Assembly (NCBI GenBank): GCA_964036045.1
Contig: OZ038378.1
Coordinates: 51,026,001 to 51,090,000, forward strand
Direction: 5' to 3'
DNA length: 64,000 nt
Origin: Eutreptiella sp. 'Long Island Sound 2002'
Lineage: Eukaryota; Protista; Euglenida
The notes beneath the pieces are model-generated. The model made no database searches, was not told the origin of the DNA, and saw only the letters and a list, made by a program, of their open reading frames with translations. Positions within the stretch are counted from its first letter, which is position 1; each line of letters opens with the position of its first letter. The position numbers were made by a program, and so were the translations under genes. Shown here one piece after another: positions 5,031 to 64,000 of the stretch.

Positions 5031-5044
5031 TCTTCTACCCCATA

Positions 5045-37790: not shown

Positions 37791-38739
37791 TATGGTGAAA
37801 TGGGGGTTCAAATTTGCATTTTTTCATCAGGCTGGGCTCTGCAGAGCCCACACTAGCCGTGTAAGCCATTTCTGGCCCCAATATTACACATCTTAGATCT
37901 CCGGGCTCTTCAAAACCCAGGTTACAAGTTATACCCTGTGTACCTACCCCCGGTACAACACTCGGCACCTGTATACAGTGGTCAAGTGGCCACGCTACAT
38001 GGCGCTGGGTTAAGTGGTATACCCTCGTTGACATTGTAACACATTCAACCTAAACATTGTCCCCGGACAGGTCAGCAGTAACAGTATTCAAGGATACAAC
38101 TCCTACATACATTACCAGTGGGCAATGATCCAAGACACTTACCACACCAGGCATCACATATTCTGGATGGAACTGCCTAAACAAGGCTTATATTAGGATT
38201 TTTCAACAACCTGGGCTCTGCAGAGGTTGTTGAAGCCCAGAGTTCATAAACTTGGTGCTTGAGGGGTGCTCATTAGGGTCTCCCTATTTGCTGGGCTCTG
38301 CAGAGCCCAGATCTTCACAACTTCCCATTTTGCCCCCTTTTGTGTGACATAATAGCGCTATGACACTTCGAAACTTATTCAACATGTGGTCTGGTAGTAT
38401 TTTTATTATGCCTTTCTGCCGCGTTGCTGTTGTATCGTGTATTACAATGGTGCACCCATGGCATTGTGTAAGTATGACAGTCGCCATTCAGGTCATACGC
38501 TGTAACAAGCCTTGGACTGTTTGCACGCAGTGTAGTCCGACGGGGTCCAGTGGGGTAGTGTTTCTATTGTTGTGGCGCGTCCGATACTATGGGAGTTTTA
38601 GGACACATTGTTTGCAATATACCCTAATCTATTGCAGTTGGTTTTTATGCATACTGTGCAGTGCTCGTACATTTACTATCTGGTCATACGTCCCGTATAT
38701 TAAGTACATGTAACATGCTATCTTCCTTTTACAACAGCC

Positions 38740-39774
38740 ATGGCTGATTTCCCACATGCTAGAGGTACGGAGGTGGATGTACCGGGTTCCGGCCAGGATA
38801 CTGAAGGAGATGAGGCTGTAGGACCTGTACCCTTACCGGTCCCATCGACCAGTGGAACAACAGCGCGTGCTGCAGCTACGCTCGCCTTGCAAGAGGCGAT
38901 TATGTTTACGGGGTCAGCACCCCCATCCCCACCCTGGCCACCAAAGCTTGTCCCCAAGGACCAGCCAACCCCACCAAAGGCCTCCTTCAATGACCCATTG
39001 ACTCCAAAGACAATGGAGTTGCTGAGGGACAACAGTGGTGACCAGGCACGATGGTTCGTGCAGTACATTTGGGGGCTTCGTGCACGGTTCCGTTTTGCAT
39101 TGCGGAACCCAATACGCACCCCCCTTGTCACATGGCAACAAGGGGATCGGATATGCCGATCCCATTTTCTGTCACGCAGCGAGGAGCGGGCTGCATTGAT
39201 CCTGGATACACTGAATCCAGAATCACGTCCCCCTGCTGAGTTGTCTCCCCATCCCCGTATCCCACCTCCTCGGCCACTTCCTCCCCCGCATGCCGACCAA
39301 CCCACACTTACACAGATTGATCGGCACCCCTCCGATCGCCAGCACGTAAGGTCCCTTCCATTACCTGTGGAAGCAGACCGCACCGGTGGGCAGTCAAAAT
39401 ACAGCCTGTTGCCACCAGTGACTGTACCACATCGAGGCACCCCCCCCGCCCTGAGTCACAGTTCAGTCACCTCCAGTGGTAGGCGGTCAGTTAGCGCCCC
39501 GCTGCCCTTGTCTGATAATGCACTACCCCCAAGGAGTTCCCTCCTGCATCCCCCCCCGCGCACTTCTCTGTTGCCCACTGCCGCTTATGCGGACAACCGA
39601 CATACCCCCAGGTACTCACTTTTGCCACATGCGCATGTAGGATTGTTGCCGGATGTGGCTCCATCTGCCCCCCCACAACCATCTACTATCCCGGTAAAGA
39701 AGGATGGTCGGTATCGGTCACGGTGGTCATTACTGCCTGATATGCCCCCGGCCAAATACCGGAAAACTCTGTGA
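38740..39774 (+). CDS. 344-aa Pro-rich hypothetical protein with about 6 'SLLP' motifs
   Basis: Intact ORF containing KYSLLPP, RSSLLHP, RTSLLPT, RYSLLPH, VGLLPD and RWSLLPD. Confidence 0.5.
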   Translation: MADFPHARGTEVDVPGSGQDTEGDEAVGPVPLPVPSTSGTTARAAATLALQEAIMFTGSAPPSPPWPPKLVPKDQPTPPKASFNDPLTPKTMELLRDNSGDQARWFVQYIWGLRARFRFALRNPIRTPLVTWQQGDRICRSHFLSRSEERAALILDTLNPESRPPAELSPHPRIPPPRPLPPPHADQPTLTQIDRHPSDRQHVRSLPLPVEADRTGGQSKYSLLPPVTVPHRGTPPALSHSSVTSSGRRSVSAPLPLSDNALPPRSSLLHPPPRTSLLPTAAYADNRHTPRYSLLPHAHVGLLPDVAPSAPPQPSTIPVKKDGRYRSRWSLLPDMPPAKYRKTL

Positions 39775-40422
39775 TGCATTAAGTGGTTGGTCTACTCCCC
39801 AAATGGGTGGTATGCACCCCCAACTATCATTTCTTGGGACCCTGGGCTCTGCAGAGCCCAGCTTGCGCCAAATGCTACTTTTACCCCTTCTCATCTCTTT
39901 GCTTGTGGCACGTCCCTCCCTCTTTTTCCTCTGTCTATTACACGGCCCGCCATTACTGATTACGGGACGCTGGGCTCTGCAGAGCCCAGCACTCATAACC
40001 TTGGTACTTGAGGGGTGCTTATTGGGGTTTCTCTGTTGGCTGGGCTCTGCAGAGCCCAGACCTTCAGCACTTCCCATTTTGCCCCCTTTTGTGTCCTAGT
40101 CTACGCCTCTAGTTCCTTGTTCTGGTCACCACCTTTTCCTGTTGTGCCACCCAGACTGTCTTATAACTATGGCACCGGTTTCTATGTCGTTGCATGTCAG
40201 CTACATGCGGTCTCTTTGTAAGACAGAATGGCGCACTGGTCGCCAAATGATATTGTCGGCTGTGCGCCGTGGTGTGGCAAAGGAATTCATAAGATTCTGT
40301 GCGGGTCTACGTGTCAACAAGCGGACCCGCATTACGATCGACCGCATTCGCAAGGTGTTGGCACGAAAAAAAATGGCCGCGTTGGCTAACTAATTTTTCC
40401 AAGGAGGGCCTATTATGTATGG

Positions 40423-42306
40423 TTGGGGATGCGTCGCATGGCCTTGCCACAAGCGGCCGTCCCCAGTGGTGAGAGCACCATTGCTGTAATGCGGGCAGAC
40501 ATCCGCAAGCTGGTGCACGCTGGTATCAGCATGCCATCCCGGTTGTCTATTACAGACCAGGGGGCATTACAGTTCCGGAAACTGTGGCGTAGCATTGTTC
40601 GCCGTGATATTGTGGTGTGGGTGGACAGCTGGTGGCATGCCCAGTTTCGGGCCAATCTGGTGAAACCCAATGTCTGTCCAGATGTGACTGCCATAGCGGT
40701 GTTGCGCACAACCCGCCTTCCTCATTTTCTTGGCCACCCGAGTCTGCGTGACCCAATGGACCGGGTGGACACAGTGGCCATGGCAGTTGTTCAACAGCAC
40801 AGAGAAATGTTGAAGGTGTGCACTGATATGTGCAATACACCCATTTCTCGGAGAACCATCCGTGCCCCCCTCGATGTTGCCCGGGAGGCTGGTAGACAGC
40901 AACTCTTTTGGAAGCCATTCGGCATATATGAGTCCCGTACAGGTCAGAACCAAGAGCTCTTGGATCTCCTCGATATGCTACGCACTACCCAACGGCATTG
41001 TCAAAAACCTATGGCATTGCTCGTTGATTGCAACATCCACTACCGGGTGCTCAAATTTTTGTACTCCAGAGCCACCATTGACAGGAATTTTCCGGATTGG
41101 TTGCGGGGTATCTCGTTGATTTACGGCGTGTGGCACCGCTACAAACATGTTTGCAATACCATTTGGCGTAAATTCTTTCCTCTGCTTTCGTACATCACCG
41201 CTCCCGTGTTTGGGGCCGGTGCGCGCATATATAACCATCCCAAACTCATTGTAATAGAGAAAACCATCGCCGCCCTCCTTCTCTCAGCCCCGGGCATACG
41301 GGCACAACTTCGGCAGAAAATTACCCTGTTTGAGGGACGCGCCAACCAAGCAGCCCTAAACACACAGGATGGGTTGCGCATCCTTCGGGGCCTTGAATCC
41401 CTCCTAAATTATTACCTCCCGGCCATCTTTGTAGTAGGACACTTAGTGCGCAATTGCACTTGGGCTGGGCGCGCCGACGGGACTGGTATAGTGGCCACGT
41501 GTGTACTTCAGTGCTGCGTGGGTCTGCTTGTTGACCTAGCCGGTCCAGGTGCAGCAAAAATGGACTATGTCCGTACCATATGCTGTGCACTTCTGTACAA
41601 TACACAATGGCACGACGACACGCCTGGTGCTGCCCATGTGGAGGAATGTTGTGAGGCCCTGCTTGCAAAATTGCGGGCACGGTGCAAGCAACAACCCGAC
41701 AAGCACACGGCGGATGAGGCTGGTGACCTCTTCCGCACCATGCCTCCCCGTCAGGAGGCACGTGCAACGGAGTCCCTCTCCGAAAGTGTGTGTGTTGAGG
41801 TGCGCGACAGGGTATGGGCACTCATGCGTGGTGCAGGACGGGAGGAGCATCCAACTGTGCGATGGTCCTCGGGTCCAGTTAGTGTGGTTGAGGCAGAAAG
41901 AGACACAACGTACGTGTTCCCCGAAAAGGGAACCGGGGGTACCCTAACAGTTGTGTTCATGAAATCTATTCTAAAGCGCTTTTTGCACACCCTAGTAGGT
42001 GGACAAGGGCTCCGCGATGATGCCATGGCTTACATACGTCAACATATCCCACTTAGGCCACCTGTGAACCGCCGCGAGGCCCGGGCAGCTGTAGAAACAG
42101 TTGGGTTCATACCAATTGCAATGAAGCACATTGTTCCCCCAGTGCCAAATGCAATGTTCATTGATCATGTGCGTGCCCCCCCTGAGGATGGCGTACCTGT
42201 GATCCGGGCGAGGGATGCTGTAGATGTTGATGCCCTGTCTAATGGCCTTGTACCTGTTGTGCTCAGTGAGGAGTTGCGTGAATTTGACCTGATAGACTCG
42301 GACTAA
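40423..42306 (+). CDS. Large putative transposase, DUF6589-like (N-terminus probably in ORF 40142-40393, separated by a frameshift)
   Basis: 627-aa open frame. LLVDCNIHYRVLK and IYGVWHRYKHVCNTIWRKF resemble the GDql...GlfH..m....iwr.h pattern I recall for DUF6589. A clear homologue lies at 63001-63978. Confidence 0.6.
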   Translation: MGMRRMALPQAAVPSGESTIAVMRADIRKLVHAGISMPSRLSITDQGALQFRKLWRSIVRRDIVVWVDSWWHAQFRANLVKPNVCPDVTAIAVLRTTRLPHFLGHPSLRDPMDRVDTVAMAVVQQHREMLKVCTDMCNTPISRRTIRAPLDVAREAGRQQLFWKPFGIYESRTGQNQELLDLLDMLRTTQRHCQKPMALLVDCNIHYRVLKFLYSRATIDRNFPDWLRGISLIYGVWHRYKHVCNTIWRKFFPLLSYITAPVFGAGARIYNHPKLIVIEKTIAALLLSAPGIRAQLRQKITLFEGRANQAALNTQDGLRILRGLESLLNYYLPAIFVVGHLVRNCTWAGRADGTGIVATCVLQCCVGLLVDLAGPGAAKMDYVRTICCALLYNTQWHDDTPGAAHVEECCEALLAKLRARCKQQPDKHTADEAGDLFRTMPPRQEARATESLSESVCVEVRDRVWALMRGAGREEHPTVRWSSGPVSVVEAERDTTYVFPEKGTGGTLTVVFMKSILKRFLHTLVGGQGLRDDAMAYIRQHIPLRPPVNRREARAAVETVGFIPIAMKHIVPPVPNAMFIDHVRAPPEDGVPVIRARDAVDVDALSNGLVPVVLSEELREFDLIDSD

Positions 42307-42790
42307 TCACGGGGCGGGTGGCAATGCAGACCCCCCCCCCCAAGGCAGGCCAACCTGCTGTGTACAGGCCCCTTATTGCTGTACCCCAGAGTCTGGGCTC
42401 TGCAGAGCCCAGCTTTCACCGCCACTGAGTTTTCAGGGGTTGTAATACTGGTTTTTGACACTCTAGGCTCTGCAGAGCCCAGCCGGTCCCCACGGTCTGA
42501 TATGTACCCGTATCTGGTCATTTTCAGTTGGTTTCTTATTGCTTTCATAGACTCAGACTAATCATCGAGGGGGCTGGCAATGCAACCCCCCCCCCAGACA
42601 GGCAAATTTGATGTTTACACCCCTGCTATCACTGTACCCCAAGTCTCTGGGCTCTGCAGAGCCCAGGTTTGCCTGACACTGAGTTTTAAGGGGTCGTATT
42701 ACTGGTTGTTGTTACTCTGGGCTGTGCAGAGCCCAGCCTGTCACCAGTGCCCGATATGTACTCCCATCTGGTCATTTGCTGTTCCTTTCT
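42292..42790. repeat. Tandem duplication, period about 254 bp, each unit carrying a palindrome doublet
   Basis: atagactcggactaatca (42292) versus atagactcagactaatca (42547). Palindromes at 42393/42463 versus 42647/42717. Confidence 0.9.
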
Positions 42791-43323
42791 TAGGGCTGGG
42801 CCAGTCCTGGACCATGCCATCTTCGTGCTTTGATCTGTGCACACATCTCCATTCTTTCGTATTGTAGTGTGCACCCGCTGCGTCAGCCTGTGTGACCCTC
42901 GAAGAGGTGTGCCTGGCACTGGTGTACTCACTGTTATGATTATTGGAGTTAAATTGCCACAGGCAGGTTTGGCTGTGTTGTTTCAGGCCATTTGCACGGG
43001 CCCAAGTTCCAGCTGGTTCATACCTGTGTCAACGAGCGACGTTTTAGTGGGCCTGTTTGATGCTGTGACCATCAATGTGCCCTGGACATTGTACTTGAGA
43101 TGCCTCTGCAGTGATTTGCTGTTTTGAAGACAGTTTTGGCTATTTCAACCCATGTGGGTGCCAATTTGAATGCTTTGATCCGACTAATTTGCTGTCCAAA
43201 TCTGCCATTTGCCACCATTGATGCTTTGAACTGTGTGATTGTTGTGCCGTTTTTGGTGACTTGATTTGTCCTGTAAAGTCTGTGTGTTTTTGGACCATGT
43301 GTGACATACCAAACGAAGTTGCC

Positions 43324-46300
43324 ATGGATGGCAACACCGCTGAGACACCAGCGATGGACACACTGGAAGCCGAGAAAGTGGACGCACTGCAGTCAGAGCC
43401 CTCCATAGAGGATGCTGTAAAGGGCAGCACTGTTGCTGGGGCCAGCCAGGCCAGTCAATCTCCCTCGCAAGTGGTGAACAAGGGTCGTGTCGCAAGGAAG
43501 ATGGGCAGTATCAAGGACTCCTCAACCGTACTGGCCATTCAAAACTACGTGGAGGTGCGGAGAGCGAAGGTGCCGCGCAAGGAATTGAAGATTGATAGGT
43601 GCATGGAGTATGGCCAATCCAGGATCATTGATTGGGACCGCGTGGCGGAGGTGAAGGAGGACCTACTGGCAAACCCCCCCGATGGCCGACTGCAGCTTCT
43701 GGTTTGGGACGACAAAGGTATGGGATTGTTGTGACGCAACTCGATCAATGTAATTGGCTACGTGGCCTGCCCTGTGTGACCTGCCATGCTGTTGTATTCA
43801 GTGGGAGCCCTGTGGGTGATTGGAGGCCAACACGGCGTTGCGGCATGTGATGAAATTTGCAAGGATGTGACAGCAAGGATGGGCGAGGTCGAGGACTGGA
43901 TGACTAACTTTGACGTGCGCATCGTCAAGTTTGATACATCCGCCGAGATCAGGCGAAAGTTCGCCGGACAACACAAAAAAGGCGCAGCACTGTGGGCGTG
44001 AGAGCAGTGTACCCCAACTGTTGAACAATTTCCTACAACTGGCGGCTGAGGACACACAATGCAAGAAGACAGTTGTCACCTTGATGTGTGAGGCAATCGT
44101 GGAGGCGGGGCTGACTACAAAATCCGGCAACACGGAGACAATCGTCAAGCAAATGAGGCCAGCTGCCCATATGGCCCTGACCTGTGGTGCCACCTTCACG
44201 GACGCACTCGGCAAGATGGTGGAACGCAAGCAGGTGATTGCCCTTTACACAATGCGATGCTTTGCTAGAATGCAACCCGACAATTTGTGGCGCGTATGCA
44301 ACTACATGGCCTCGCCGAAGAGTACGGTACCGGGCTTCCAGAAGCTGGCAAAGGAGCTCCGCGCTGGGGAATTGTGGTGGTATCACTTTGGTCATCCCGA
44401 CATGCCAGTTGAGCGCATCCACCCTTCACGACGTATGCTGTTGCTTTGTAAGCCCCTGCCTTTTGTTGTGATTGGGCCGCTTCGGCAGGGAGCCTGGATG
44501 AAGTGTAATGACCGATTTCAGTGTGGCAGTTTGGGTCTGCTGGGCTCTGCAGAGCCCAGGATCCCCTGGGTTGCCAATTGACTGCATGCAAACTTGCAAA
44601 GAGACGCTGGATTTGTAGGATTGCTCAAACTTCCGCAACTTCACTCATGATGACCGGTGCACTCTTGCCTAATGATGTCCAAGCCCCCCCCCCCCCGGGA
44701 GAACCCCTAATTCACCATTTTGTTCATGCAAGGCTTTGCAGAGCCCTGATGGAGGGAGTTGACCAATTTCAGACGCCATATTACCATCTGCAGAGTTCTG
44801 GGCTCTGCAGAGCCCAGGATCCCTTGGGATGCCAATTGACTGCATGTACAGAGACGCTTGATCTGTTGGATTGTCCGAACTTCCGCAACTTCACTCCCGA
44901 TTACCGGTGCACTGTTGCCTAATGATGCCCAAGCCCCCCCCCCCCCCCGGGACAACCCCTAATTCACCATTTTGGTCATGCTGGGCTCTGCAGAGCTCAG
45001 ATGGAGGGAGTTAACCAATTTCAGACGCCATATTACCATCTGGAGAGTTCTGGGCTCTGCAGAGCCCAAGATCCCCTGGGATGCCAATTGACTGCATGTA
45101 CAGAGACGCTGGATGTGTTGGATTGTCCGAACTTCCGCAACTTCACTCCCGATTACCGGTGCACTCTTGCCTAATGATGTCCAAGCCCCCCCCCCTCCCC
45201 GGGACACCCCCCAATTCACCATTTTCGTCATGCTATGCTCTGCAGAGCCCAGATGGAGGGAGTTGACCCAATTTTAGATGCCATATTACCATTTGGAGAG
45301 TTCTGGGCTCTGTAGAGCCCAGGATCCCCTGGGATGCCAATAGACTGCATGTACAGAGACGCTGGACTTGTTGAAGCTTCCTTGACGCTGGACCTGTTGA
45401 CCACTGCGGCCTGGCCTATTGATGTCCCACGAACCCCCCCCCCCCCCGGGCCACCCCGCAAATTGCCAATTTAGTCATGCTGGGCTCTGCAGAGCCCAAA
45501 TGAACCACAGCGACCAATTTCAGCCTTCATGTTACCAATTTGACAGTGCTGGGCTCTGCAGAGCCCAGGATCCAACAAAATGCAAATTTATGCTTTGCCG
45601 GATCGCTGTGACTTGGTGGATCGCTGCCCTCCTGCCCTCCTCTATGGCTCCTGTACACACAGGCACAAAGACTGAAGTGGCTCGCATCTCAAAGAAGTTT
45701 AGTCACCGTCTGGCGACTTTTGGTGCATGGCAAGGGAGCTGGGAGTACAGCGAGAGCACGCCCTGGCCACCGCTCCAGGCGCTGTTGAAGGCAGGTCTCT
45801 GGGTCAGCGATCGAGAAGATGTCGAAGCCCATCGCAGAATGCTTGTGAGACCAGTGTTGAACCCAGCTGTTGAGGTGTTTGGTGGCGAGGTGGCAAAGGT
45901 CAATGTTGGCACGGGGTCACAATCTGGAGAAATTTGGGCGTACGATGGATCGGTGACCGCAGTCCCAAACGAGATCAAACTGCTGAAGTACAATCTCGTC
46001 ATTGTTGAAGTCCCGCGGCGTGGAGGGTGGATCCCTGGTGCGCAGACTGTGCGTGTGCTGTCTCAAGGGGTACTTGGCGCCTTTCATGGACACCATAAGA
46101 ATTTGGTCGCTGTGGAACAACACTTGCGGTCGCAATTGGAAGATTTGTACCCAACGGCTTTGCGCATGGCTGTGTACCACCTGGGGCGCCGAGAAGAGCC
46201 ATATTTTTTGAGCAGTCAACCTTGTTGCTGGTGAAGACCCATGGGCTGGGCCCTGCAGTGCCGCACTTCCTCACACAAAGGTCGTTCACTGAAGGTCTGT

Positions 46301-47010
46301 GGCTGGGTCTGGCTATTTTGTGGTGGTTGGTGAATTTGCTGGAGGACCTCAACGAAGACTCGGACGACACGCACATGGATGGTGATGCATCGCGCTGCCT
46401 GTGGGCACTGTACTATGGCCGCCGCCCCGACCTGATCAGTCTGGGCTGTATTCACTTGCCTGTCCCGTTGAATTGCGCATGGGGTGTACTATCCGATGGT
46501 CCCTACAATGCAGCTGATGTGGTGAACCTGCTGAAGACGAGCGTCCGGAAAGGGGACACGGAGGAGGATGTTGAGTGGCGGAGTGTCACGCACTGGGCAA
46601 GCACCGGGCAGCCGCTGTTCCGGCAGGAGTCCCCTGACCAGGCAGCAGACGCGGACACGAGTGAGTCAGAAGTCGAGGAGGTGCCGGATCCGCAAACTCC
46701 CAAGCCGAAGGGGAGAAACACCGAAAAGCAGCGGCAGAAGGATCATGGGAAGGCGGAGCGCGAGTCGCGGAAGCAAGAGGAGGCACGGGAGAAGCAACGT
46801 AAGAAGGAGGAGAAGGAGAAGGAGAAAAAGGCAAGAGAGGACGAACGAGCAAATCGCAAGAGAAAAGAAGAGGAGGATAAGTTGGCAACGGCAGCCGCTG
46901 GCGCGTCCCCATCGCAGAAAAAAAGGGCAGTTGAGGGCCTGGAGGCCACCCTGCAACGTGGTGTCCGGGTTGGCTTGTCCAAGAGCAACGGCAAGAGCAA
47001 CGGCAAGTGA
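43324..47010 (+). pseudogene. ParB/Srx-like N-terminal domain fused to a degenerate beta-class DNA amino-methyltransferase-like fold, plus E/K-rich tail (multi-exon, frameshifts)
   Basis: YGQSRIIDWDRVAEVKEDLLANPP, then intron 43718-43801, then WVIGGQHGVAA. After IHPSR there is an intron holding the 252-bp array. The later LWWLVNLLEDLNEDSDDTHMDGDASRCLWALYYGRR resembles MTase motif X/I. Homologous to 58420-60874. Confidence 0.6.
44540..45568. repeat. Tandem array of about 4 x 252 bp, two palindromes and a poly-C run per unit, inside an intron
   Basis: Unit starts at 44540, 44798, 45050, 45303 and 45549 (periods 258, 252, 253, 246). Confidence 0.95.
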
Positions 47011-48962
47011 CCAGAGGCCCCACATACCGCCGGATCATGACTGTCGCTGGACCATACCGGACATACAACCACAGACGCGTCCGTGTTACTCTGCTGGTTT
47101 TGTGAGCGCCTGATGTGACTGGGCTTGTCCTGTGCAGTCCCAAATGGTTGTGGGACAGTGAATGATGTGCCTGTTTGACGCTGTACGTGTTTGTGGCTGA
47201 ATTTGACGCTCATTTTTTTGATTTGCACTGAGCTGGGCTCTACAGAGCCCAGCTTGCCAGATTTGCTTGATTTGCCCCCGAATATGAACAATTTTATACT
47301 GCTGGGCTCTGCAGAGCCCAGCATGTTGTTTCAGGCCAATTTGCATGCCTCCTGGTGGTACGCAGTGCTGCTTTCATCTCAACAGTGTCCCTGTGTCCCT
47401 GTGTGAATTTGGTTGTATCAGCACAACATTGTGCTCTGGCATTTCTTTTGGTACGTCCCTCGTTGACACAGTGTGCCAACTGTCGAGTTTTCTCACAATT
47501 TTGGTCCATATACGGTGCCAGGTTTGTGTGTATGAGCCCCAGATCATTTAATTCTTGCTATTTTTTTACCAGTCCATGCCCTGCAAAGTCCAGATGCCTT
47601 TTGTAACTCTGATTTGGTCCTGACATGTTCTGTTGCCCGTGCCTGGGCCTTGCAGAGCTCAGCTGAACGTGTCTGTCATTTCGAGTTTACCAGGTATGCC
47701 CTGAGTCCAATTTCAAGTCAGTAGTTTGGGCACATGTTTGCTTTTTATCGCTGAGCCACGTTTTATTCCTCGCTGTCATGTATGCTCAATTGCATTGATC
47801 TGTTGGGCCTGTGTTTTTTCATTTCTCCAGCGGTTGACAGTGCGTATGTTGGACATTGGCCTGACACTGTCTACTGTGCGATGCTTAATTTTTTGATGTG
47901 ATTTGTGGCAGATTTTTGTTGGTGTCAACCATTTATCGATAGTTCAACATTTGCTCGGAATTTAGAAGGGGGAACAGTCTTTGTGTGGCCAGGTGTTAGT
48001 AGGTGCTTGTGAACCACATCTGGGGACACATCAGTCTGTAGTCAATAGAGCATCCAATTTTGTTGTTCTGGCGGACCTCCTACAGCGCACATAACGGTTT
48101 TCTCAACTTCTGTGCCTTGTTTTGTGTGTGTTCGTGCCTTAGACTCGTCAACTAGTGTGTACAGCTTCCATGCCTTGTGTATGACTGGTGCTCTAGTGGT
48201 CTATCGCTTATTGCGCTGAGATTTTTTTCGCGGGGGGGGGGGGGGGCGGGGGAGGGGTATAGGCCGATGCCTATTGTAGCCATTACTACACTGGTGGTCT
48301 GGCTTGTTTATCAATAGCGTAATTCATGGGTGCTTTGTGATGTTTGTATTGAGCAGAGCCCAGCCAGTAGGAATTCCCTATTTAACGCCCTGTTACTACC
48401 TGTTTGCCTGTACACTGTTGTGTTGGTGTACCACCCTGTACTATTACCCCCGTTTTTAGTGAATTTCATGTATCTGGGCTCTGCAGAGCCCAGTCTTTCA
48501 GAAATGCTGCCTTGCACCCTCCTTTTGTATAGGTGCTATTCTCTGTTGTGATAGGGGACACCTTCTTCACAGGCGGTGCATGTAAGGTCACGAATGCCGT
48601 TATAATACCACGGGTGCTAGAAGAACCGCAGCACATGCCGTTGCCACCTATGTGCTCCATTTGTGATATCAGACTGTGAAACATAGTTTTATGGTGCGAC
48701 TGGTCCATTTTCAGTATTTCAGACCTCCAAAATTGGAAAAAACAGTCGCTGCGCTTGCATGCTGTGGGGGCCCAAAATGGTGCCTTTTGGGTGCTTCGCA
48801 CCCCTAAATTGCGTGTCGTTCCTCCTCCCCATACACCCTGGCTGGGAACCACCCCTCCGTTACGCTTGGCTATGCAGCAGGGAGGCTAGGCTTTGTGTAG
48901 GACATGAATTTTTTTTGAAAAAAAGATAGGGGGCACTATGGGCCTCCTAAAAAGGTGGCCGC

Positions 48963-50078: not shown

Positions 50079-50214
50079 TTTTGTGGCGCCGTATGGCGGC
50101 AAGTTCCAGTTTAAGCGGATGAAGACAGCCCAATGAGCCTGCCCAATGAGCCCATTGGACCTTGCCACAATTCCTCTGTTCCTGCTTCTACATGTGATGT
50201 GTTCATCTTTGGGG

Positions 50215-53564: not shown

Positions 53565-53845
53565 GCCTTGTGCTTGATGTGTGTTGGCTACCCGGCAAAG
53601 GAGTGGGATGGGTTTTAGGGCTTTTGTCTCAATTCGTTGCGGAAAGAATGCTTTCGGAGCTGTTTTGTGCCATGCAACACACCCACCGCGCTTTGATTGT
53701 TGTACTTGTTGTATGTTTGCTACCCAGCAAAGGAGTGGGACGGGTTTCAGGGCCTTTGTCACAAATTGGTTTCGGAAACAATGCTTTTAGACATCTGTTA
53801 TGCCATGGAACAGCCCCAATGCGCTTTGATTGTTGTGCTTTGATT
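53565..53845. repeat. Tandem repeat, about 2.1 x 130 bp
   Basis: ctacccggcaaaggagtggg at 53589 and ctacccagcaaaggagtggg at 53719. Confidence 0.85.
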
Positions 53846-55004
53846 GGCAGGAAGGGTACATGGAAGGGTGGTAGGAAGGGGTGTTCTTGGCCTAGAAAAA
53901 CGTGGTAGAAAGGGTGTCAGGAACCGTGTTCCTGGCCAAAAACGGGGCTCCTACGTGGGCCACACAAGTGTTCCTGGCCCGGAAACCCCTGCCACGAAGT
54001 ACGAGCCAATAGTTGTGTCGATCTTTTTCCAAAAGTGTTGAAATAGCATTATGCACCAAGACACATTGAGCGGGCGCTATACATCCATTCGCCAAAGGAA
54101 GAGCACTCTACAAATAATGAAATGTGATCTTTGCAAGCATGCATTGTACAGTCAATTGTGTGCATGCATGCCGGTGATTATGGGGTAGGAACATTGCCAT
54201 CCAAGCGAACACTAGCTCGGAAGCCTGCCAACCACGCGCCTCATCCATTTTTCACCAACCCATCGACTCTGAGTTGCGAAAAATGGGTACATCTTCCCCC
54301 CTAGGCTCCCAGCTTAAATCACGAGGATCTCCTGGCCCATCTCTCTATCTTCCGGACTTTTTGTCGTTCCGCCCGTCTCTCCCTCTTTCGGAATTCCTCT
54401 CTTGCTCTCCACTTCTTTCGGATCCATCTCACCCGGCACCTCCTCTTTCTTCACCGGTGGAACACCAGTGTGTCCGTCCTATGCATTGAGGGGCTCTTGC
54501 TTTATCCTCAAAAAATGTGGCACATAGATAACACGTGGTACAATTAAAGGTAGTTCCGGAGGCAAACCCAAAGGTGGGGAAGCCAAAGGCGAAGAATAGG
54601 CCACAAGCGGCACTGTCAGACCAAGGGCAACACATAAGACATGTAACACAAACAACCAGTAAAACACACACTCGGGCAGCTTCTTTATGCTAGAATGGGG
54701 GCAGAACATCACGATGCGTCTGATGCTTTGTGCTAGCATCTAGCGGTGCGTCTAGCCTGTCACGAAGCGGCGGATTGTGGCTTGGAGGCGGACCGTGAGG
54801 CGGCAGAGGGTAACTGGAGTAGGTGGTCGTAGTTGAAGGGGGTGGACAATTGTAACGGCGGAGGTGCGGGTACTACTCCTTCATTGAGGAGAATACACCG
54901 GTGGCCTCCATGGAAACGTCCATACTAGTCGTTATAGTTCCCGGGGTACTCCTCATGGAACGGGGAGAATGCTCAAACGGCAGAGGCAACCGTCAGGGGC
55001 AATT

Positions 55005-56600
55005 GAAGAAGCACCTATGTATAAGATGGAAACACGCAACACGCGCCAAACCGAAAGGGGGCATCCTCCATAGGCGTGTTTGGGGGTTAAGAAAAGAAAA
55101 ATACCCGTTGCCGCAAGTTATGACGTCTCAACAACGCTTAACGGCCACTTCCCAGCATCGGGCGGCCCCTCTCCTTGGTGACTTCGTACTCCGCATAGTC
55201 GAAGCCTTGCAGCATGTGCAAATTTTTTCTGGCCCGAACCATGCAGAAAAGTGGGTTAAGAGGTGCAATATATGGAGGCACCCTCCGGAGATGCACCAAG
55301 AGGCGGCAAAATAGGGTGCGCAAAAGGAACACGTAAGGCGGACACACAGGCAAAACAACAGGTACTGCTTGGACACACGGAAGAGTTGCCGGAGATCTGT
55401 TTGCATGCCGAGGTGTCCTTGAAAGTCATGATGCTGATCCGATCATTGGGCAAAATCGACTGGGGCCTCCAAGGAAACCTCCATACTAGTATTTGTGGTA
55501 CCCGGGGTAGTACTCGTGGAACAAGGAGCATGCGTACATGGCGGAGGCAACTTGTAGAGGCAATGCAAGAAGCACCTATGTATAAGACGGAAACACGTAA
55601 CACGCGCAAAACCTAAAGGGGGCATCCTCCGTAGACGTGTTTCAAGGTCACAAGGAAGGAACGCACCCAATCCCGCAAGTTCCGACTTCTCAGCAGCGCT
55701 TCAGCGCCACTTTCTAGCATCATGCGGCGCCTCTCCTTGGTGAGTTCGTAGTCCGCATAGTCCAACCCTTGCAGCGTGTGCAAATTTTGCCCGGCCCGAA
55801 CCATGCAGGGAAATGGGTTAGGAGGCGCAAAACATGGAGGCACCCTTTGGAGACGCACCAAGCGGCGGCACATAAGGGTGCGCAAAAGGCGTATTGCGCT
55901 CTAAACCCGTAAGGCAGCCACAGAGGCAACACAACAGGTACTGCTTGGACACACGGAAGAGTTGCCGGAGATTCGTCTGCATGCCGAGGTGTCCTCGAAA
56001 GCCATGATGCTCGTCCGCTCATTGGGCAGAATCGACTGGGGCCTCCAAGGAAACCTCCATACTAGTATTTGTGGTACCCGGGGTAGTACTCGTGGAACAA
56101 GGAGCATGCGTACATGGCGGAGGCAACTTGCAGAGGCAATGCAAGAAGCACCTATGTATAAGACGGAAACACGTAGCACGCGCAAAACCTAAAGGGGGCA
56201 TCCTCCGTAGACGTGTTTGAAGGTAACAAGGAAGGAACGTGCTCGATGCCGCAGGTTCGGACTTCTCAACAGCGCCTCGGCGCCACTTTCTAGCATCATG
56301 CGGCGCCTCTCCGTGGTGCGTTCGTAGTCTGCATAGTCCAACCTCGTGCAATGTCCCCAAAACTTCCCGGCACAAACCATGCAGAAATCTGGGTTAGGAG
56401 GCGCAAAATATGGAGGCAGCCCCTAGAGGCACACCAAGAGGCGGCAAAATAGCACACGAAAATGGCGCATTGCGCTCTAAACATGTAGGGGGGCACACAG
56501 AGCCAACACAACACGTACTGCTCGGGACACACGGAAAAGTTGCTAGAGATGCGTCTTCATGCCGAGGTGTCCTCCAAACTCTTGCCGCTGATGCGCTCAT
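55005..56600. repeat. Tandem triplication (561/576-bp period) of a two-exon module of gene X
   Basis: gcacctatgtataaga at 55011, 55572 and 56148. The minus-strand peptides NERTSIMAFEDTS and DYADYELTKERRRMMLESGAEALLRSR match gene X SDRVSTMGMEDIV and LMAYKLEEERQLELPASGAWSLVRTR. Confidence 0.9.
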
Positions 56601-57700
56601 GCCGGTCCTTCCGTAATCCTCCGCCTTTTCTCCTAATCCGGGGGTGGGATAACCTCCCTCACGCAAAGATCTCCAAACTTGGTGACCTACTCAAGGCCTT
56701 GCCCGCACCACGTGCACAGGGACACAGAGCGCATGAGACGCGTTTCCACTTGCCATTGGGTGCTAACGGGGTATGTGCACTCAAACGGAACACGTGCGGA
56801 GGCATTACCCCAGGCACCTTCTGTCCCGTGGTGGAGAAGCGATAGCAAGTTGTATGCTCCAACATCCGTTGTAAGCAACAGGGCGAGGCCCAGCTCGCGG
56901 CGTGCAGCTCCATTCTCCGCAAGGCATTTTGAGTAGTCATGCAAACACACCCAATTAAGGTGCTGCACCCCTCTCCGACACACAGTGCATGTCCGCTTTG
57001 TCCCCGGTCCTGTCCGCGATTTTTTCATGGCTTGTAGATGTGGTTGGCATCGTCCTTCATGGGCTGCTTTGCTCCACCACAAACAAGACACTTCCCCACA
57101 CAATTTATTTGTCTTTTTCGTATTTCCCCTCTTCTTTCTTCAAGGTGCTCTTGTTGTTGGGCTTCCTCTTCTTTTCCGCGGCCATTCCTTGTGGGCCCGT
57201 GTTTTGGATGCCTGATAGGTGTTGAAGTTGTGTGCCTTGGTGTGCGCAGCTACCTCCACCATGGCACTCCGAAATTCGTTGGCATTGTGCTGCTGCTTGA
57301 TCTCTCCGATGGGGTTACAAGGTGCGACGGGGGCAAAAGCTGCCTTGACACCTTTGGCCTTCGTCTTTGCTTCCCTACCTTTTTCCACCTTCTCTCTAAC
57401 AGTCCACCTATGGCGTCAAGGGGTTCTCCTCTCAACCCTCTTCCTCCTCATTCTTAGTGTATCTCAATCTTTTCGTCCGCATTGGTGTTGCCCGAATCCT
57501 CATCCACCTCATCCTTGGGCACCCACGTCCACACTGTGTTCCTTGCAGTCTGTAGAATACACAAAACACGAGAGTTGCCTTTGGGAGCAAAGGCGGAGGC
57601 ATACGCAAAGAACCGGCAAAATGCGGAACAGGCGCAACATACGCAAAGCAACACGTAGAGGCAAGTGCGGACATGAATGACGACAGCTCGCGGAACACCG
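56600..57700 (-). pseudogene. 'Gene X' copy 3
   Basis: HDYSKCLAENGAARRELGLALLLTTDVGAYNLLSLL aligns with HYRECLSEEPKSKQELGLALLLHTSVQALSVQSVL. Confidence 0.7.
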
Positions 57701-58419
57701 CACATTGTTGTCTACCACATGAGCGTGTCTTTGTGGGTGACGGGCTTCCTGGACCACCGCGAGGCTCTTGGCCTTGCCTTGCGGGGGCTTCTGCAAATAG
57801 GGGTCAAGGTGGGGGGGTGGAGAAACTCAAGCACCATGCGCTTTTCATCTATGCCCCCTTTTGTATCGTTCCGCCACTCGCGATACATTCTTAGGTGGCC
57901 GAAGCATGTACGCTTTTGTACCGGGAAGTCTACAAATTTGGTAGAGGTAATTTGCCCGATTTACCTGCTTTTTTTAACCACACAATTTGACTACTCAGTT
58001 TTTTGGCCCAATTACCCACAAAAATGCATGATTTTCCTCCAACAAAGCTCACACAAATTTTGCCATTTTACCCACTTTTCCGTAAAAAGCACCATATTTT
58101 GGGGGGTTTCGGGCTATAAAACCTTGCTCTTTGTTGTTGTCCTCTCCTTGCTTCTTTTTTTTGCACACTTAAAAATCCAATTTTTACGCCGGAGGTTTCC
58201 CAAATGCTGTAAAAGTACAACACTTTCCGATTCGTATTGCGAGGCCTCGCAATATGAGACATGAATCAACATAATTCTTTGCAATTACACACACCTTTGG
58301 GTCACACAGAAGCAAGCAAAAAGAGAACACAGCGTATCAATACATTGTTTGCGTTGACACGTGAGGCTTTCGGAATGCGAGGCCTCGCAATACTGACTGC
58401 TGCTGCCTTAGGGTCATTA

Positions 58420-60874
58420 TAATCATCATCTCCAGATGATGCTTCTTCGGCTTTTTCCGCTTTGGCGCCTGGCTGGCCTCCGGCTCCTCTTCATCTGCAT
58501 CGCCAGCCTCGAACAGCCGAAGCTGCGTTGACTTCCGAGGAGATGGCCGATCAGATCCTGGCAGCACCGGGTCTTCATCATCGTCCTCAGGATCCTCCAA
58601 GTCCTCGGCTACGACTTCTGCATGGGCATGTTGACTCGCTTCCTCTGCAGTCGACACTTCCAGACGGGCATACCCCACATTCTCGTCCTCGACCCACATT
58701 GGCATGCGGAACTCGATCCAGAGCTCCCATTGCGCCAACTTGGTCTGGTCAAATCCCGCCTGCACACGCTGCGTCACCTCGTGATGGTAGCTCCGTGCTC
58801 AGTCCGATCACTTTTGTTTGGTCAGCTGCAGAGAACAAACTTGTGGAGGATCATCCAAAGCTGCCACTTTCGCCGCCATATGCACATCGCGATCGAAGAT
58901 CATGACGTTGTCAGAGCGGTCTCTGTTCCGCATCAGCGTTGCGAGCCACGTATAGAGGACAAGGGGCATGAGCCCTGGTTCATCACGTTTGCGGCGACCC
59001 AAGCCGCTGTATGGTGGAATCTGCGATGAGGAGTAGCGAGATGTCAAAGGCATTGCAAGGCCTCGCAATCCAAAAGCCTTGTACATACCTTTTTCTTGAT
59101 CTTCACACCGGGCACTAGAACCAGTGCTTTCACTTGAATTCCGCCTTTTCTAGTTTTGCCCGCACCCGGTAGCCAGTAACACACTTGCACTTTCTCATAC
59201 CAGTAATCGTTCTCCGCAATTCCAGGTGCCTCCAGAATTGTTGCCAGAGCGTCCCACACGGGCGACACCTCGCCGTAGATCACAAGCACAGCTTCGGGGT
59301 TGTCGATCAACTTGGCCATCACAACGGGACTCACTGAATCAGTACCGTCCGCCAGATTCGCATTCAGAATAATCATGTCGGTGTCTAGCGCCTCCAAAAA
59401 CTTAAGGGGATCTTGCGGATCTTTTTAGGGGGTGCACAGCATTTTCACCATCTTTCCACTGGCCTCAATGTTCAGCACATCCACTTTTCCAGACTCCGTA
59501 GACTTGACCTCCGTCAAGGGCGATGCCAGTCCTGCACGCAGGCGACCAAGGTCCATTGATGCCCCATGCTTTGGAAAAGTGTGTCCCAATGCCGTCCAGA
59601 ACCGCGCCTTGCTCAGCGTTTCCCATTTTGGCGACGGAGCCTCAGCTTTCCATTGCTAGGTCCCCAAAGGGATCCGAAACCAATTGACATCCCAGTCATG
59701 CAACGGTACCCTCTCTGCCAAACCGGCCTCTGCACACGTGTGGAAAGTTTGTATTGATCGACCGTGCTTCGTGTTTGCGTGTTTGCCTACTTGCTTGCGA
59801 GGGGAACATACTTCGAGAGGGATGGATGACGCTGTCCGGAGCGGCTCCCCAATGGCAATTGATCCACTGCTGCTTCTGGTAAGTCGTGGCCTGGTCTTGG
59901 ATTTCCTTGATGTTCGTCTTTGGTCTCGACATGTCGGCGGCGACCCGTTGTAGGAGGGCTGGCTCGTACAGACTCTGTAGAAACTTCAGCTGGTTCATTG
60001 TCACTGCTGTGTCCATGTTCTCGAAATTCATCAGGGACTGCACCGCTGCGTCCTCCGCGTGGTACACCCACGTCAAGAACGGTCCAAACGCCTTCACCGC
60101 ATAAGTCTCAACAGGAGGAGGGTACGTAGCCAGATTGCGGATTGTGAGGCCTCGCATTCGAAAAAGGAACATACTTGGAGTTCATCATCGGAAACCTGTG
60201 GAGGAATCCATGCATATCCGCTCGCGGCCTTCGGAATGGTTCGGTGAATGTGATCCCTGGCAGACTCGTCAGGCACAGCTGGCGAATCTTGCGAATGCAT
60301 AAGGAAGTTGTCAGCTGCTTCCGACGGTGGCACGGCAGAGATGTCTAGATCGATGGCCTGCTTCCGACCTGCGAGTCCTACCCGAGTAGCCCAACTCGTC
60401 TCCGTCTTCAGCAGGTTGACCTTAACAATTTGCATCCACTGCGGTGGGTTGAGGCCTTTCTCAAGACGTTCGTTTCGGAGCTCTTTGAGCGCATAGACGC
60501 AGTGCTGCTTTGCAATACTGATCCAATCATCGGCTTGAGACGGAAAAAGGGTGTTGAGAGCATGCACATGAAATGTCGCCGCCGCGGCCCGGTTACGTAC
60601 TTGGTGATTGCCATGTAGTCACGGTCACGGGCTCCTCAGGAGGGTTTGCCATGAGACTTCTCTTAACCTCGTCCACTCGCTTTTGTTGATACTTCCAGAT
60701 CTGACCGTACTTCTTCTGCTTGTCGATCACAAGGCTCGTGACGTGGACCTCCACTTGCAAAGGCTTCTTGTAGAACCTCAGGAACTCCTCTGGCACCGTG
60801 TCCTGCGTGGACGGTACTTGTGAGGTGTTTGGTGATGCTCTGCCCGCTTTTGTTTGCGTCAAGCTCTCTGCCAT
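58420..60874 (-). pseudogene. ParB/Srx-like + degenerate MTase-like fold gene of element B
   Basis: LVIDKQKKYGQIW...VDEVKRSLMANPPEEPVTV, WISIAKQH and WINCHWGAAPDSVIHPSR, followed by an intron at the same position as in element A. The later PLVLYTWLATLMRNRDRSDNVMIFD resembles MTase motif X/I. It has in-frame stops. Confidence 0.6.
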
Positions 60875-63360
60875 GTTGAAATAGGCTTGTAAAAAGGGAA
60901 AAAACTGTATGTATTTATGCTTGGATTGCGAGGGCTCGCAATCGACAACATAGGTATTTGTTTGCAATTACCTACTTCGTGTTGCGAGGCCTCATATTAC
61001 GGTAAGAACATCTATCCAAAAACGTACTTTTTCAGCATACAATTGCGAGGGCTCGCATTCCCAACACGCAGGAGCGAGCAAAAGCACCGGCATGCGCGCA
61101 ACAACAACAACAGAGCTCGGAATCAACCTAAAACCGATTCTATGCATCGGTAAACGCCCAAATTGTGTCCAGAATGTTCGTTCGCTGCGCAACAGACCGC
61201 AGCGGAACCTTGTTGTCCATCAATCGTAGCAAGGCAGGTGAGAAGTTCCGGGGCCGCCGCAGAAATGTATGCAAAACATCTGTCACCATAACCCTGTATG
61301 TGTCCACGTCCGGCTCGCTGTAAGGGTCGGACGGGAAATCCGGTTCAGCCTCCCAGTGCCTCTCCATAGTCGAGGTACCCGATTGCCAGGGACAGTACCT
61401 GATTCTCAGGCGGTCGTCAGTAAGATACGAGCGCAAGGGCTATCGTATCTCGGTTTCAATGTCGGACAAGAAACCACTCACCAGGAGTTTTGGTCTAAGA
61501 AAAGCCAGCGGTGGATCGACTGTACTATCCTGCCAAAGGTGCCATGTCCGAAGTGTGGTCAACGGCATTGGTACCACGAGGCAGAGGCCTTTGGCCGTGG
61601 AGCCTGACTACGAGAACATGGGGGGGGCGCGTTGGATGAGGTGGACAGGGGGGGTCGGGCACTCCGCGAGGCCATACAGCAGTACCTTGATGCCATACAG
61701 TCAGAGCCTGGACACACCTGGCTGTCGGCGGCAGCACATGCCCTGGAGAAGAGCACCAGGAAGGGATACGCAGCAGCCCTTCGACGGCTGCGGAAACGCA
61801 GTCGGGAACATTTTGGGGCGAGCCCACGCCAGGTTCTGGAGTTGGAGATCAAGGAAATGGTGGCAAGTGAGAACGCGGAGGGGAAACTCAAAACGTTACT
61901 GTCCGCCTGCAGGCAGTTGGACAAGTTACGGCTTCATCCCAGGATTGTGGAAGCCTCGGACTGGCAGGTGGTCAAGTGGTTGGCAAAGAGGCGGGTACAT
62001 AGCCAGATTGCGGATTGTGAGGCCTCGCATTCGAAAAAGGAACATACTTGGAGTTCATCATTGGAAACCTGTGGAGGAATCCATGCATATCCGCTCGCGG
62101 CCTTTGGAATGGTTCGGTGAATGTGATCCCTGGCAGACTCGGTAGGCACAGCCGGCGAATCTTGCAAATGCATAAGGAAGTTGTCGGCTGCTTCCGACGG
62201 TGGCACGGCAGAGATGTCTAGATCGATGGCTTGCTTCCGACCTGCGATTCCTACCCGAGTAGCCCAACTTGTCTCCGTCTTCAGCACGTTGACCTTAACA
62301 ATTTGCATCCACTGCGGTGGGTCGAGGCCTTTCTCAAGACGTTCGTTTCGGAGCTCTTTGAGCGCACAGACGCAGTGCTGCTTTGCAATAACGATCCAAT
62401 CATCGGCTGGAGACGGAAAAAGGGTGTTGAGAGCATGCACACGAAAGGTCGCCGCTGCGGCCCGGTTAGGTACTTGGTGATTGCCATGCAGTCACGGTCA
62501 CGGGCTCCTCAGGAGGGTTTGCCATGAGACTTCTCTTAACCTCGTCCACTCGCTTTTGTTGCTACTTCCGGATCTGACCGTACTTCTTCTACTTGTAGAT
62601 CACAAGGCTCGTGACGTGGACCTCCACTTGCAAAGGCTTCTTGTGGAACCTCAAGAACTCCTCTGGCACCGTGTCCTGCGTGGACGGTACTTGTGAGGTG
62701 TTTGGTGATGCTCTGCCCGCTTTTGTTGGCGTCAAGCTCTGTGCCATGTTGAAATGGTTTTGTAAAAAGGGAGAAAACTGTATGTATTTATGCTTGGATT
62801 GCGAGGGCTCGCAATCGACAACGTAGGTATTTGTTTGCAATTACCTACTTCGTGTTGCGAGGCCTCACATTAAGGTAAGAACATCTATCCAAAAACGTAC
62901 TTTTTCAGCATACAATTGCGTGGGCTCGCATTCCCAACACGCAGGAGCGAGCAAAAGCACCGGCATGCGCGCAACAACAACAACAGAGCTGGGAATCAAC
63001 CTAAAACCGATTCAATGCATCGGTAAAGGCCCAGATTGTGTCCAGAATGTTCGTTCGCTGCGCAACCGACCGCAGCGGAACCTTGTTGTCCATCAATCGT
63101 AGCACGGCAGGTGAGAAGTTCCGGGGCCGCCGCAGAAATGTACGCAAAACATCTGTCACCATAGTCCTGTATGTGTCCACATCCGGCTCGCTGTAAGGGT
63201 CGGACGGGAAATCCGGTTCAGCCTCCCGGTGCCTCTCCATAGTCGAGGTACCTGATTGCCAGGGACAGTACCCAATTCTCAGGCGGTCGTCAGTAACATA
63301 CGAGCGCAAGCGCTGTCGGATCTCGGTTTCAATGTCGGACGACAAACCACTCACCAGGAG
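60121..63360. repeat. Direct duplication of about 1367 bp (60121-61487 and 61994-63360; offset 1873)
   Basis: Near-identical text in both copies, and duplicated ORFs 60094-60567/61934-62440 and 61140-61436/63001-63612. Confidence 0.97.
61488..61993 (+). mobile_element. DIRS/tyrosine-recombinase retroelement fragment (gag-like zinc knuckle end + YR N-terminus)
   Basis: VPCPKCGQRHWYHE, followed by SAAAHALEKSTRKGYAAALRRL...LKTLLSACRQLDKL, which resembles the YR core-binding domain start. Confidence 0.55.
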
Positions 63361-64000
63361 GCGTCTGTTAATTCTAGTAGGGCAGATTGCGACAAACAAA
63401 TCTTCCACGTCGCTCGGTGTGACGGCCCAGGTGTGTCTGTCTTTCATGGACCCCAGTCGACTGAGCATAACTTCGCCAAACTCTTTACCATGACACAATC
63501 CGGGCAGGGCGCCGTTGAACGCCTGCCAATGCAACAAGGCGACACCGATGGTCCTCACATACACAAGTGGGTCAGCTGCAGCCCTGCCAAGCTCTATTAA
63601 AAGCACGAACACCAGTCGCAGAACATGATGGGCGTCGATGGCCGATCCTGGGTGCCGTCCGGACTAGTTGCATTGCCTCACGAGAAATCCACAGTAGAGG
63701 ACAAGCGGACACCAGTTCTGCAGAAGGTTCACCATAGCTTTACATACCACACCCTTTAGTCGATCCATCGCCGTCCCACTGTGATCGGCAACAGCCTGTA
63801 ATCTGTTGGACTTCCGCCACAACTGCCGCAAGAAATGCGGCGCACACTTCAGGATGCCAGCAATAGTTCTCTCCATGACTCTCAGCTTCGGGCACGACCC
63901 TACTTTTTTTCCCACTCCTAAGCGGCCAAAGCGGAAGTACACAAGCAGCGAATGAAAGCGCCGCCACACGTTTGTCACAAGGTATTTATAGGGATGCCAA
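63001..64000 (-). pseudogene. DUF6589-like putative transposase of element B (runs off the window)
   Basis: TNVWRRFHSLL...PKLRVMERTIAGILKCAP...NLLQNWCPLVLYCGFLVRQCN and YVRTIGVALL align with NTIWRKFFPLL...PKLIVIEKTIAALLLSAP...SLLNYYLPAIFVVGHLVRNCT and YVRTICCALL of the 627-aa ORF. Confidence 0.75.

Follow-up and report, generated by a model that had tools for sequence, protein, structure and literature searches.

The window, a stretch of 64,000 nucleotides from contig OZ038378.1 of Eutreptiella sp. 'Long Island Sound 2002', contains two dead copies of one lineage of DNA transposons with terminal inverted repeats (TIRs) and target-site duplications (TSDs), which are called element A and element B in the following. 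Both elements encode an accessory protein, and a ParB/Srx fold is well supported by homology for its N-terminal part. In addition, each non-coding segment of the two elements (subterminal, intergenic and intronic) holds a perfect, family-specific palindrome of 14-20 bp. These palindromes may be cis-sites under selection, to which a dimeric DNA-binding protein encoded by the element attaches. The likeliest binder would be the ParB-like accessory protein, acting via its helical domain, and the binding would let each family recognise its own copies and no others. We lean towards this explanation as a whole, i.e., a dead TIR/TSD lineage, an accessory protein with a ParB fold and palindromes as its cognate self-recognition sites, albeit only slightly.

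Two dead copies of one transposon lineage

Element A is an 11.2-kb transposon of the cut-and-paste type (37726-48951), and all of its genes are on the plus strand. The termini read CTTAG...CTAAG, and the palindrome-bearing region is bounded by the inverted repeats of 41 nt. In a further copy (L001) the similarity to the window, with an identity of 95%, begins exactly at 37726 and ends exactly at 48950, and the sequence beyond these limits is unrelated. L001 is flanked by a duplication of AGAAG, while the copy in the window is flanked by AAGGT. Because the similarity to L001 stops at the TIRs and the two 5-bp TSDs differ, element A could be defined as a complete unit with TIRs and a 5-bp TSD. 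The family is present in high copy number, as thousands of contig pieces with at least 90% identity to its accessory gene were found in DNA sequencing runs. The copy in the window is dead, with frameshifts near 40375, 43990 and 46207.

Element B lies on the minus strand. The terminal 11-12 nt of its visible end resemble those of A, and the terminal CTTAGGNGGCC is common to both elements. The large open reading frame (ORF) of B is 30% identical to that of A (E 5e-31), and the accessory exons are 28-31% identical. The two elements are thus diverged members of one transposon lineage, as had been claimed in a preceding reading of the DNA (the sequence-only reading). The same reading had described a common order of the large ORF, three to four palindromes and the ParB-like gene, and this order was verified. 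In A four sites (42393-42736) are located between the stop codon at 42306 and the ATG near 43297, and in B three sites (62917, 62856, 62800) are located between the stop codon at 63001 and the ATG at 62745. Also the shared intron directly after IHPSR was found at the proposed place, in A (44432/44433) as well as in B (59812/59811), and the phase was the same (phase 1). An exon end ...HP[ST]R recurs in many relatives in the databases. The limits of the two elements had to be corrected, because 37.8-48.5 kb and 58.2-64 kb had been proposed, while A has the ends given above and B extends from 57890 beyond the end of the window.

Each family has its own palindrome

Palindrome A, CTGGGCTCTGCAGAGCCCAG, occurs at 20 sites with up to two mismatches, all of which lie within 37832-48493, while none was expected in the window. 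With up to four mismatches the number rises to 23 sites, and all of them are intergenic or in intron 2 of the accessory gene, none in a coding exon. In element B the 20-mer TATTGCGAGGCCTCGCAATA is present exactly only once (58235), together with one copy with two mismatches. The B core palindrome, TGCGAGGCCTCGCA, has a length of 14 bp and occurs at 11 sites with up to two mismatches, all within 58238-62930 (0.26 expected). Four of the 11 lie in the internal duplication of B, and the number of independent sites is therefore seven. Both palindromes are absent from the respective other element and from the remaining about 46 kb of the window, and no exact match to palindrome A was found among metagenome contigs. 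The earlier claim that A carries only its own palindrome and B only its own thus holds with respect to cross-occurrence in the window, but the repeat unit of B turned out to be the 14-bp core instead of the 20-mer. Similarly, the claim that the sites avoid exons is true for all 23 sites of A, whereas one site of B (58373) may fall into the last codons of a degenerate frame.

Ten palindrome pairs of element A are doublets with a distance of 69-70 bp from start to start. In unrelated doublets the spacers are only 33% identical, but their length is constant (49-50 bp) and the 20-mers stay perfect. A reading of the 90-bp doublets as miniature inverted-repeat transposable elements (MITEs) was rejected, because the spacers are unrelated in sequence. 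In B, spacings of 56-61 bp or 138 bp are present, as well as single sites.

One alternative is that the palindromes act as nucleic-acid structures, either as hairpins with a 20-bp stem in RNA or single-stranded DNA (which could terminate transcripts or supply a small-RNA pathway against all copies) or as cruciforms. A long hairpin is indeed predicted for every doublet of A (-23 to -28 kcal/mol, z -6.5 to -8.2), and the sites bracket every gene, where untranslated regions and transcript ends would be located. However, the fold follows trivially from the presence of two identical palindromes, the single sites and the different spacings in B do not fit, and both the family-specific sequence and the fixed spacer length would be left unexplained. 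A structural role is thus regarded as distinctly unlikely.

The proposal that each family is marked by its own palindrome could be extended to five further contigs, all from other samples (L005, L007, L009, L010, L012; Table 1). Subfamilies with a large ORF that is 72-74% identical to that of A still have palindrome A. The sites in L010 (478, 1095, 3393, 3465) share the outer CTGGGC...GCCCAG with palindrome A, while the central 8 bp differ (TCTGCAGA versus GCGATCGC). To judge from these sequences, changes in specificity may be concentrated in the middle of the site. In addition, a second inverted-repeat motif, GGTGTTTnTCAACACC, is present four times in L010, at 1-1200 and 3280-3618, and thus one element can carry two kinds of site. 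A search for related loci with a narrow alignment revealed one further locus.

The distribution across families is also relevant for another alternative, namely that the palindromes are functionless and represent a by-product that arose by internal tandem duplication, by gene conversion or through a very small MITE-like insertion spreading in the master copy. Part of the count stems from the 252-bp tandem array in intron 2 and from a 254-bp duplication, the array length varies between copies, and the decay after insertion is neutral. But a palindrome is retained in at least six families from several samples, its sequence is different in most of them, the placement is alike in the longer contigs, and doublets at 67-72 bp are present in three other families. 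Furthermore, the 20-mers of A are perfect next to spacers with an identity down to 33%, and no copies are found elsewhere in the window. The absence of any function is therefore regarded as very unlikely.

A ParB-like accessory protein

When the intact exon 2 of L001 was used for an exhaustive phmmer search, 77 relatives were obtained, and in five of them (277-333 amino acids) the parts of exon 1 and exon 2 are contiguous. P0061 is collinear with the window. Exon 1 is 38% identical to its residues 68-127 (E 5e-10), and the A-family exon 2 (L001) is 27% identical to its residues 130-303 (E 3e-19). The fold was modelled for residues 60-313 of P0061 with an alignment of 27 sequences, i.e., for a homologue with 27-38% identity and not for the broken protein of the window. 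The model had a predicted local distance difference test (pLDDT) value of 87. With Foldseek the top 18 matches in the PDB were all ParB, Noc or KorB (best E 3e-5), and one entry among the fold matches, 8qa8, has a title that describes KorB as a transcriptional repressor. With VIA-align the model matched ParB of M. xanthus with a Z of 10.3 and a root-mean-square deviation (rmsd) of 2.6 A over 95 residues with 23% identity. Entries 1-32 were all proteins with a ParB/Srx fold, and then Z falls to 3. Also among the nearest clusters in the AlphaFold DB were ParB proteins. The name 'DNA methylase N-4/N-6 domain-containing protein' is given to two of the 12 nearest, which were aligned over their ParB part. 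Taken together, the ParB/Srx fold that had been proposed for the N-terminal domain is well supported by homology for the accessory protein of the window.

The GGQH motif, which had been highlighted earlier, is present in A, but B has AKQH instead. GGQH is nearly invariant, with the variants AGQH and SGQH, and is found at the position equivalent to GERR of ParB, and none of the families has an arginine there. In the P0061 model this position lies between a strand and a helix, as GERR does in ParB. The N-terminal domain is followed in the model by a middle domain of five helices. The Foldseek alignments that cross this domain comprise 222-233 columns, with a high rmsd of 13-17 A.

For the C-terminal part, P0097 (residues 1-340), which represents an intact A-family exon, was modelled with 19 sequences from three families only, and the pLDDT was 41. 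With this low-confidence model Foldseek gave weak matches (E 7.5e-3 or worse), which were enriched in N6-adenine methylases (CcrM, METTL14, MTA1, RsrI), and by VIA-align no more than a generic alpha/beta core was recognised (Z up to 8.1). Because of the low pLDDT the fold searches cannot discriminate the methylase fold, which had been proposed in the sequence-only reading, from other folds. The C-terminal parts of P0097 and of the metagenome contig L005, which has an undamaged, distant C-terminal exon, had no Pfam match (PF01555 included) even at an E of 10. A profile search of PDB sequences with the C-terminal alignment yielded noise only, and in an Atlas feature search the domain stayed below the recognition threshold or had scores of 0.80 or less. 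The absence of a DPPY motif, which had already been noted, was confirmed. Its place is taken by VEVPRRG in A and by EVPPAY in L005. The homologue contigs L006-L009 are too short to include C-terminal domains.

Candidate proteins for binding to the palindromes

Apart from the accessory protein, both elements encode the large ORF, and A has an additional ORF1, which had no Pfam match. The large ORF of A is 93% identical to P0001 (663 amino acids, 83 member sequences, ENA assembly), and its N-terminal part sits in another frame. A hmmscan search against Pfam with E up to 1 was empty for the ORF of the window as well as for P0001, P0014 and P0016, and the threshold of DUF6589 (PF20231) was not reached. 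In a search with language-model features DUF6589 made up 69 of the 100 top clusters, with a score of 0.84. In comparison with relatives of 34-43% identity the motifs VDNW, LLVDCN, WHPYKH and VIEK are conserved, and VDNW, LLVDCN and VIEK are acidic. Two internally deleted copies of the A family (L002, L003) have retained ORF1, the large ORF and the palindromes, while the accessory gene is gone. Based on the TIR/TSD structure and the retention in these deletion derivatives, the large ORF is presumed to be the transposase. In L003 the large ORF is fused directly onto the end of accessory exon 3.

It could be the transposase or ORF1 that binds the palindromes, and the ParB-like protein would then have an unrelated role. 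Sites are present 100-600 bp from both ends (37832-38310, 47233-48493), the palindromes of L010 flank the large ORF, and other DNA transposons likewise have several binding motifs in subterminal and internal positions. The retention of ORF1, the large ORF and the palindromes in the two copies without the accessory gene also speaks for this possibility. However, most sites are far away from the ends, in intergenic regions and in the intron of the accessory gene. In addition, A and B have conserved termini but unrelated palindromes, in agreement with a division of labour in which a transposase recognises the ends and a second protein the palindromes. Perfect palindromes of 16-20 bp suit a dimeric helix-turn-helix protein of the ParB type, and the published arrays of red algae likewise adjoin a ParB-like gene. 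Binding by the transposase or ORF1 is therefore unlikely in our view.

We infer instead that the accessory protein binds the palindromes. The sites are dispersed through the whole element, with clusters next to the accessory gene and within it. With less confidence, we assume that the protein, once bound, would control the transcriptional or chromatin state of the copies of its family, as KorB and VANC do. Alternatively, it would draw the long element together so that it can transpose, in analogy to TnpA of En/Spm.

Several results weigh against a role of the accessory protein as a palindrome-binding ParB-type protein. First, the deletion derivatives without the accessory gene and with palindromes fit a transposase or ORF1 as binder equally well. 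Second, the ParB fold was demonstrated on P0061, a relative, rather than on the protein of the window. A Pfam scan of the raw ORFs and the homologues revealed no family for the accessory protein at E up to 1, and a profile search of PDB sequences with the N-terminal alignment yielded no ParB and noise only. VIA-align matched only residues 17-135, and no match to the helix-turn-helix of ParB was obtained for the middle domain. The arginine motif of ParB that binds cytidine triphosphate (CTP), GERRxR, is absent. Third, the palindromes differ by 5.4% between two dead copies versus 4.7% in other non-coding DNA, which indicates neutral decay. Because dead copies decay neutrally after insertion, we infer selection on the palindromes from the comparison between families only. 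Fourth, with regard to expression and splicing of the accessory gene, the runs that contain the sequence are DNA-like (introns covered, no splice joints), and the small RNA-labelled run contained no match. Last, the window has a third palindromic repeat, i.e., short arrays with an 11-bp period on TTCGCGCGAA (5040-5090, 5127-5177, 6813-6874, 8682-8743), with six core sites versus 0.16 expected. Neither the ParB-like gene nor the large ORF had a detectable homologue near this family (5040-8743), and the ORFs there had no Pfam match.

A more far-reaching version would be that the accessory protein is a eukaryotic, nucleotide-switched clamp of the ParB type, which would load at the palindrome doublets, spread over the element and either shield the copies from silencing or tether excised DNA to the chromatin against loss at division. 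This would represent a plasmid-style partition or operator system in a eukaryotic nucleus. Because the arginine-rich CTP motif is missing, a ParB-type CTP clamp is not indicated, and this version is considered to be very improbable.

Features of the two elements and their surroundings

The features are summarized in Table 1. The frameshifts in the accessory gene are not typical for the family, because L001 and most other copies read through at these sites. The other copies differ from the window at 43976-43991, and most have an extra base at 46206. An undamaged version of exon 2 is present in L001 at 13499-14128, and a profile search identified P0096 and P0097 as undamaged A-family versions of exon 3. 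The two copies of the duplicated segment in B are separated by about 510 bp of unrelated sequence. In accessory exon 1 a TAG is found in the upstream copy of this duplication and a CAG in the downstream copy.

Table 1. Coordinates of the features of elements A and B in the window, and palindromes of related families in contigs from other samples.
Feature	Position	Strand	Remarks
TSD of A, left copy, AAGGT	37721-37725		pentamer recurs after the right end
Left TIR of A, begins CTTAGGAGGCC	37726-37767	+	41 nt, 88% complementary to the right end (repeat search)
Two palindrome doublets, A	37832-38310		37832/37901 and 38211/38291, first site of the latter pair split by a short insertion
ORF1, A	38740-39774	+	344 amino acids, proline-rich, from the ORF list; 78-89% conserved in L001-L004
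Palindromes between ORF1 and large ORF, A	39842-40059		single site 39842, doublet 39970/40040
Large ORF (presumed transposase), A	40169-42306	+	about 712 amino acids; frameshift near 40375-40395 in the window copy
Two palindrome doublets between large ORF and accessory gene, A	42393-42736		42393/42463 and 42647/42717; block duplicated 254 bp apart
Accessory gene exon 1, A	43297-43717	+	acidic N-terminus and first half of the ParB/Srx domain; GT splice site at 43718
Accessory gene exon 2, A	43802-44432	+	GGQH motif, remainder of the ParB/Srx domain, helical middle domain; ends with ...IHPSR; frameshift near 43990
Accessory gene intron 2, A	44433-45662	+	252-bp tandem array; nine palindromes (four doublets and one single site)
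Accessory gene exon 3, A	45663-47010	+	C-terminal alpha/beta domain, K/E-rich tail; frameshift about 46207
Downstream palindromes, A	47233-48493		doublet 47233/47302, degenerate site 47643, single site 48474
Right TIR of A	48910-48951	-	final base mutated, CTAAA for CTAAG
TSD of A, right copy, AAGGT	48952-48956
Element B	57890-64000	-	3' end at 57890 (...GGCCACCTAAG), runs past the window end at 64000; degenerate, in-frame stops
B core palindrome sites	58238, 58376, 59054, 60143, 60927, 60983, 61044, 62016, 62800, 62856, 62917
Accessory gene of B, more complete copy	58400-60874	-	exons about 60874-60601, 60533-60175, 60106-59812 (ends with IHPSR), 59730-59089 (two stops), 59020-58841, tail
Duplicated segment of B (about 1.36 kb), first copy	61988-63350	-	end of large ORF, three palindromes, accessory exons 1-2 with in-frame stops
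Duplicated segment of B (about 1.36 kb), second copy	60115-61477	-	96% identical, spacing 1873
Large ORF of B, 3' part	63001-64000	-	truncated at the window end; a single break near 63650
ACCCGAAATTTCGGGT, nine copies	L005 (4.7 kb), coding for P0061 plus the C-terminal exon		introns and downstream; three doublets at 67-68 bp
TTTCGCATATGCGAAA, two copies	L009, with accessory-gene exon		on either side of the exon
GTGCGCGTACGCGCAC and a variant	L007, with accessory-gene exon		variant 84 bp downstream
CTGGGCGCGATCGCGCCCAG-like sites, about six	L010, with large ORF 34% identical to that of A		one doublet at 72 bp
GCGATCGC-core palindromes, three copies	L012, with accessory-gene exon		around the accessory exon

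Three observations concern the DNA outside of the two elements. Just upstream of element A, at 37248-37266, GAGTGTCTTTTTTTTTTTG is present. It has two mismatches to the Euglena spliced-leader sequence and is taken as a lead to the host lineage only. Between A and B, at 54903-56600, about three tandem units of 560-580 bp are found that are 82-95% identical. Lastly, the DNA that flanks the A-family copy in L004 contains a perfect 14-bp palindrome, TTATCGCGCGATAA, twice (4197 and 6085), which may belong to another element family.

Comparison with known systems

The accessory protein PAG3 is encoded in Plavaka, Zisupton and Fanzor-linked elements of red algae and has a remotely ParB-like N-terminus and a putative 2-oxoglutarate (2OG) oxygenase (Petroll et al. 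2025, bioRxiv 10.1101/2025.02.11.637652). Tandem inverted-repeat arrays adjoin its gene and differ between families, and the authors propose that PAG3 binds and modifies its own element (10.1101/2025.02.11.637652). The ParB-like N-terminus and the inverted-repeat arrays beside the gene are thus common to both systems. Compared by description, the C-terminus is a putative 2OG-dependent oxygenase in PAG3, in contrast to an alpha/beta domain (low-confidence model) in the present case. In addition, the transposase is of the EnSpm/Plavaka type there, while a DUF6589-like ORF, CTTAG termini and 5-bp TSDs are found here, in another host lineage. The palindromes described here are distributed across all non-coding parts, and doublets with a fixed spacer are present in A and some of the related contigs.

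A further accessory protein, in the Sola1-1 element of Ectocarpus, is a fusion of ParB and a DNA methyltransferase (N4/N6), and earlier cases in green and red algae are cited in the same paper (PMC12477816). As cited there, Iyer, Abhiman & Aravind 2011 had described ParB-like accessory proteins in algal transposons (PMC12477816). The likeness to the ParB-N4/N6 methyltransferase fusions is that the two AlphaFold DB clusters mentioned above, of the 12 nearest to the P0061 model, carry the name of this methylase. The difference is the lack of a PF01555 match and of DPPY. If the accessory protein is descended from a ParB-methylase fusion, the methylase is degenerate here.

With regard to KorB of plasmid RK2 and to SopB/sopC and ParB/parS of plasmids and chromosomes, the similarity lies in the fold, as KorB, ParB and Noc were the top structural matches. 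ParB-fold proteins bind palindromes of 13-16 bp as dimers. The KorB operators are dispersed through the intergenic regions of RK2, for which KorB is a global repressor, and sopC is a tandem repeat array with a palindrome in each repeat. In contrast, the system described here belongs to a eukaryotic nuclear transposon, it has GGQH instead of GERRxR, no partner ATPase and a different C-terminal domain.

TnpA of En/Spm (CACTA) is another case of a second element-encoded protein with repeated sites. It binds repeated motifs, including inverted pairs, helps to join the ends and counteracts methylation. The protein is unrelated, and its 12-bp motifs are subterminal only.

VANC of the Arabidopsis VANDAL elements binds short, non-palindromic motifs in the non-coding regions of its own family, and the tandem targets differ between related families (Hosaka et al. 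2017, PMC5735166). Both binding and hypomethylation were shown experimentally for VANC (PMC5735166). Again, an element-encoded accessory protein is combined with family-specific non-coding motifs, with the binding being predicted in the present case. The folds are unrelated, and the motifs of VANC are short and non-palindromic.

Taken together, the general concept has already been published for red and brown algae. Contrary to the suggestion of the sequence-only reading, the elements are not a new system, because ParB-like accessory proteins in algal transposons are known from the literature. A literature search did not find a paper on such elements in the host's kind of organism. New are the host lineage, the type of transposase, the C-terminal domain and the co-variation of the palindrome across several families. 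The fixed doublet spacing of 49-50 bp is a concrete structural constraint, which could be explained by a binding or structural study. If the ParB-like protein binds the palindromes of its family, the elements would offer a natural set of orthogonal pairs of proteins and DNA sites in a eukaryote, and they would be the second independent case, after VANC in plants, of transposons that have evolved private codes of self-recognition.

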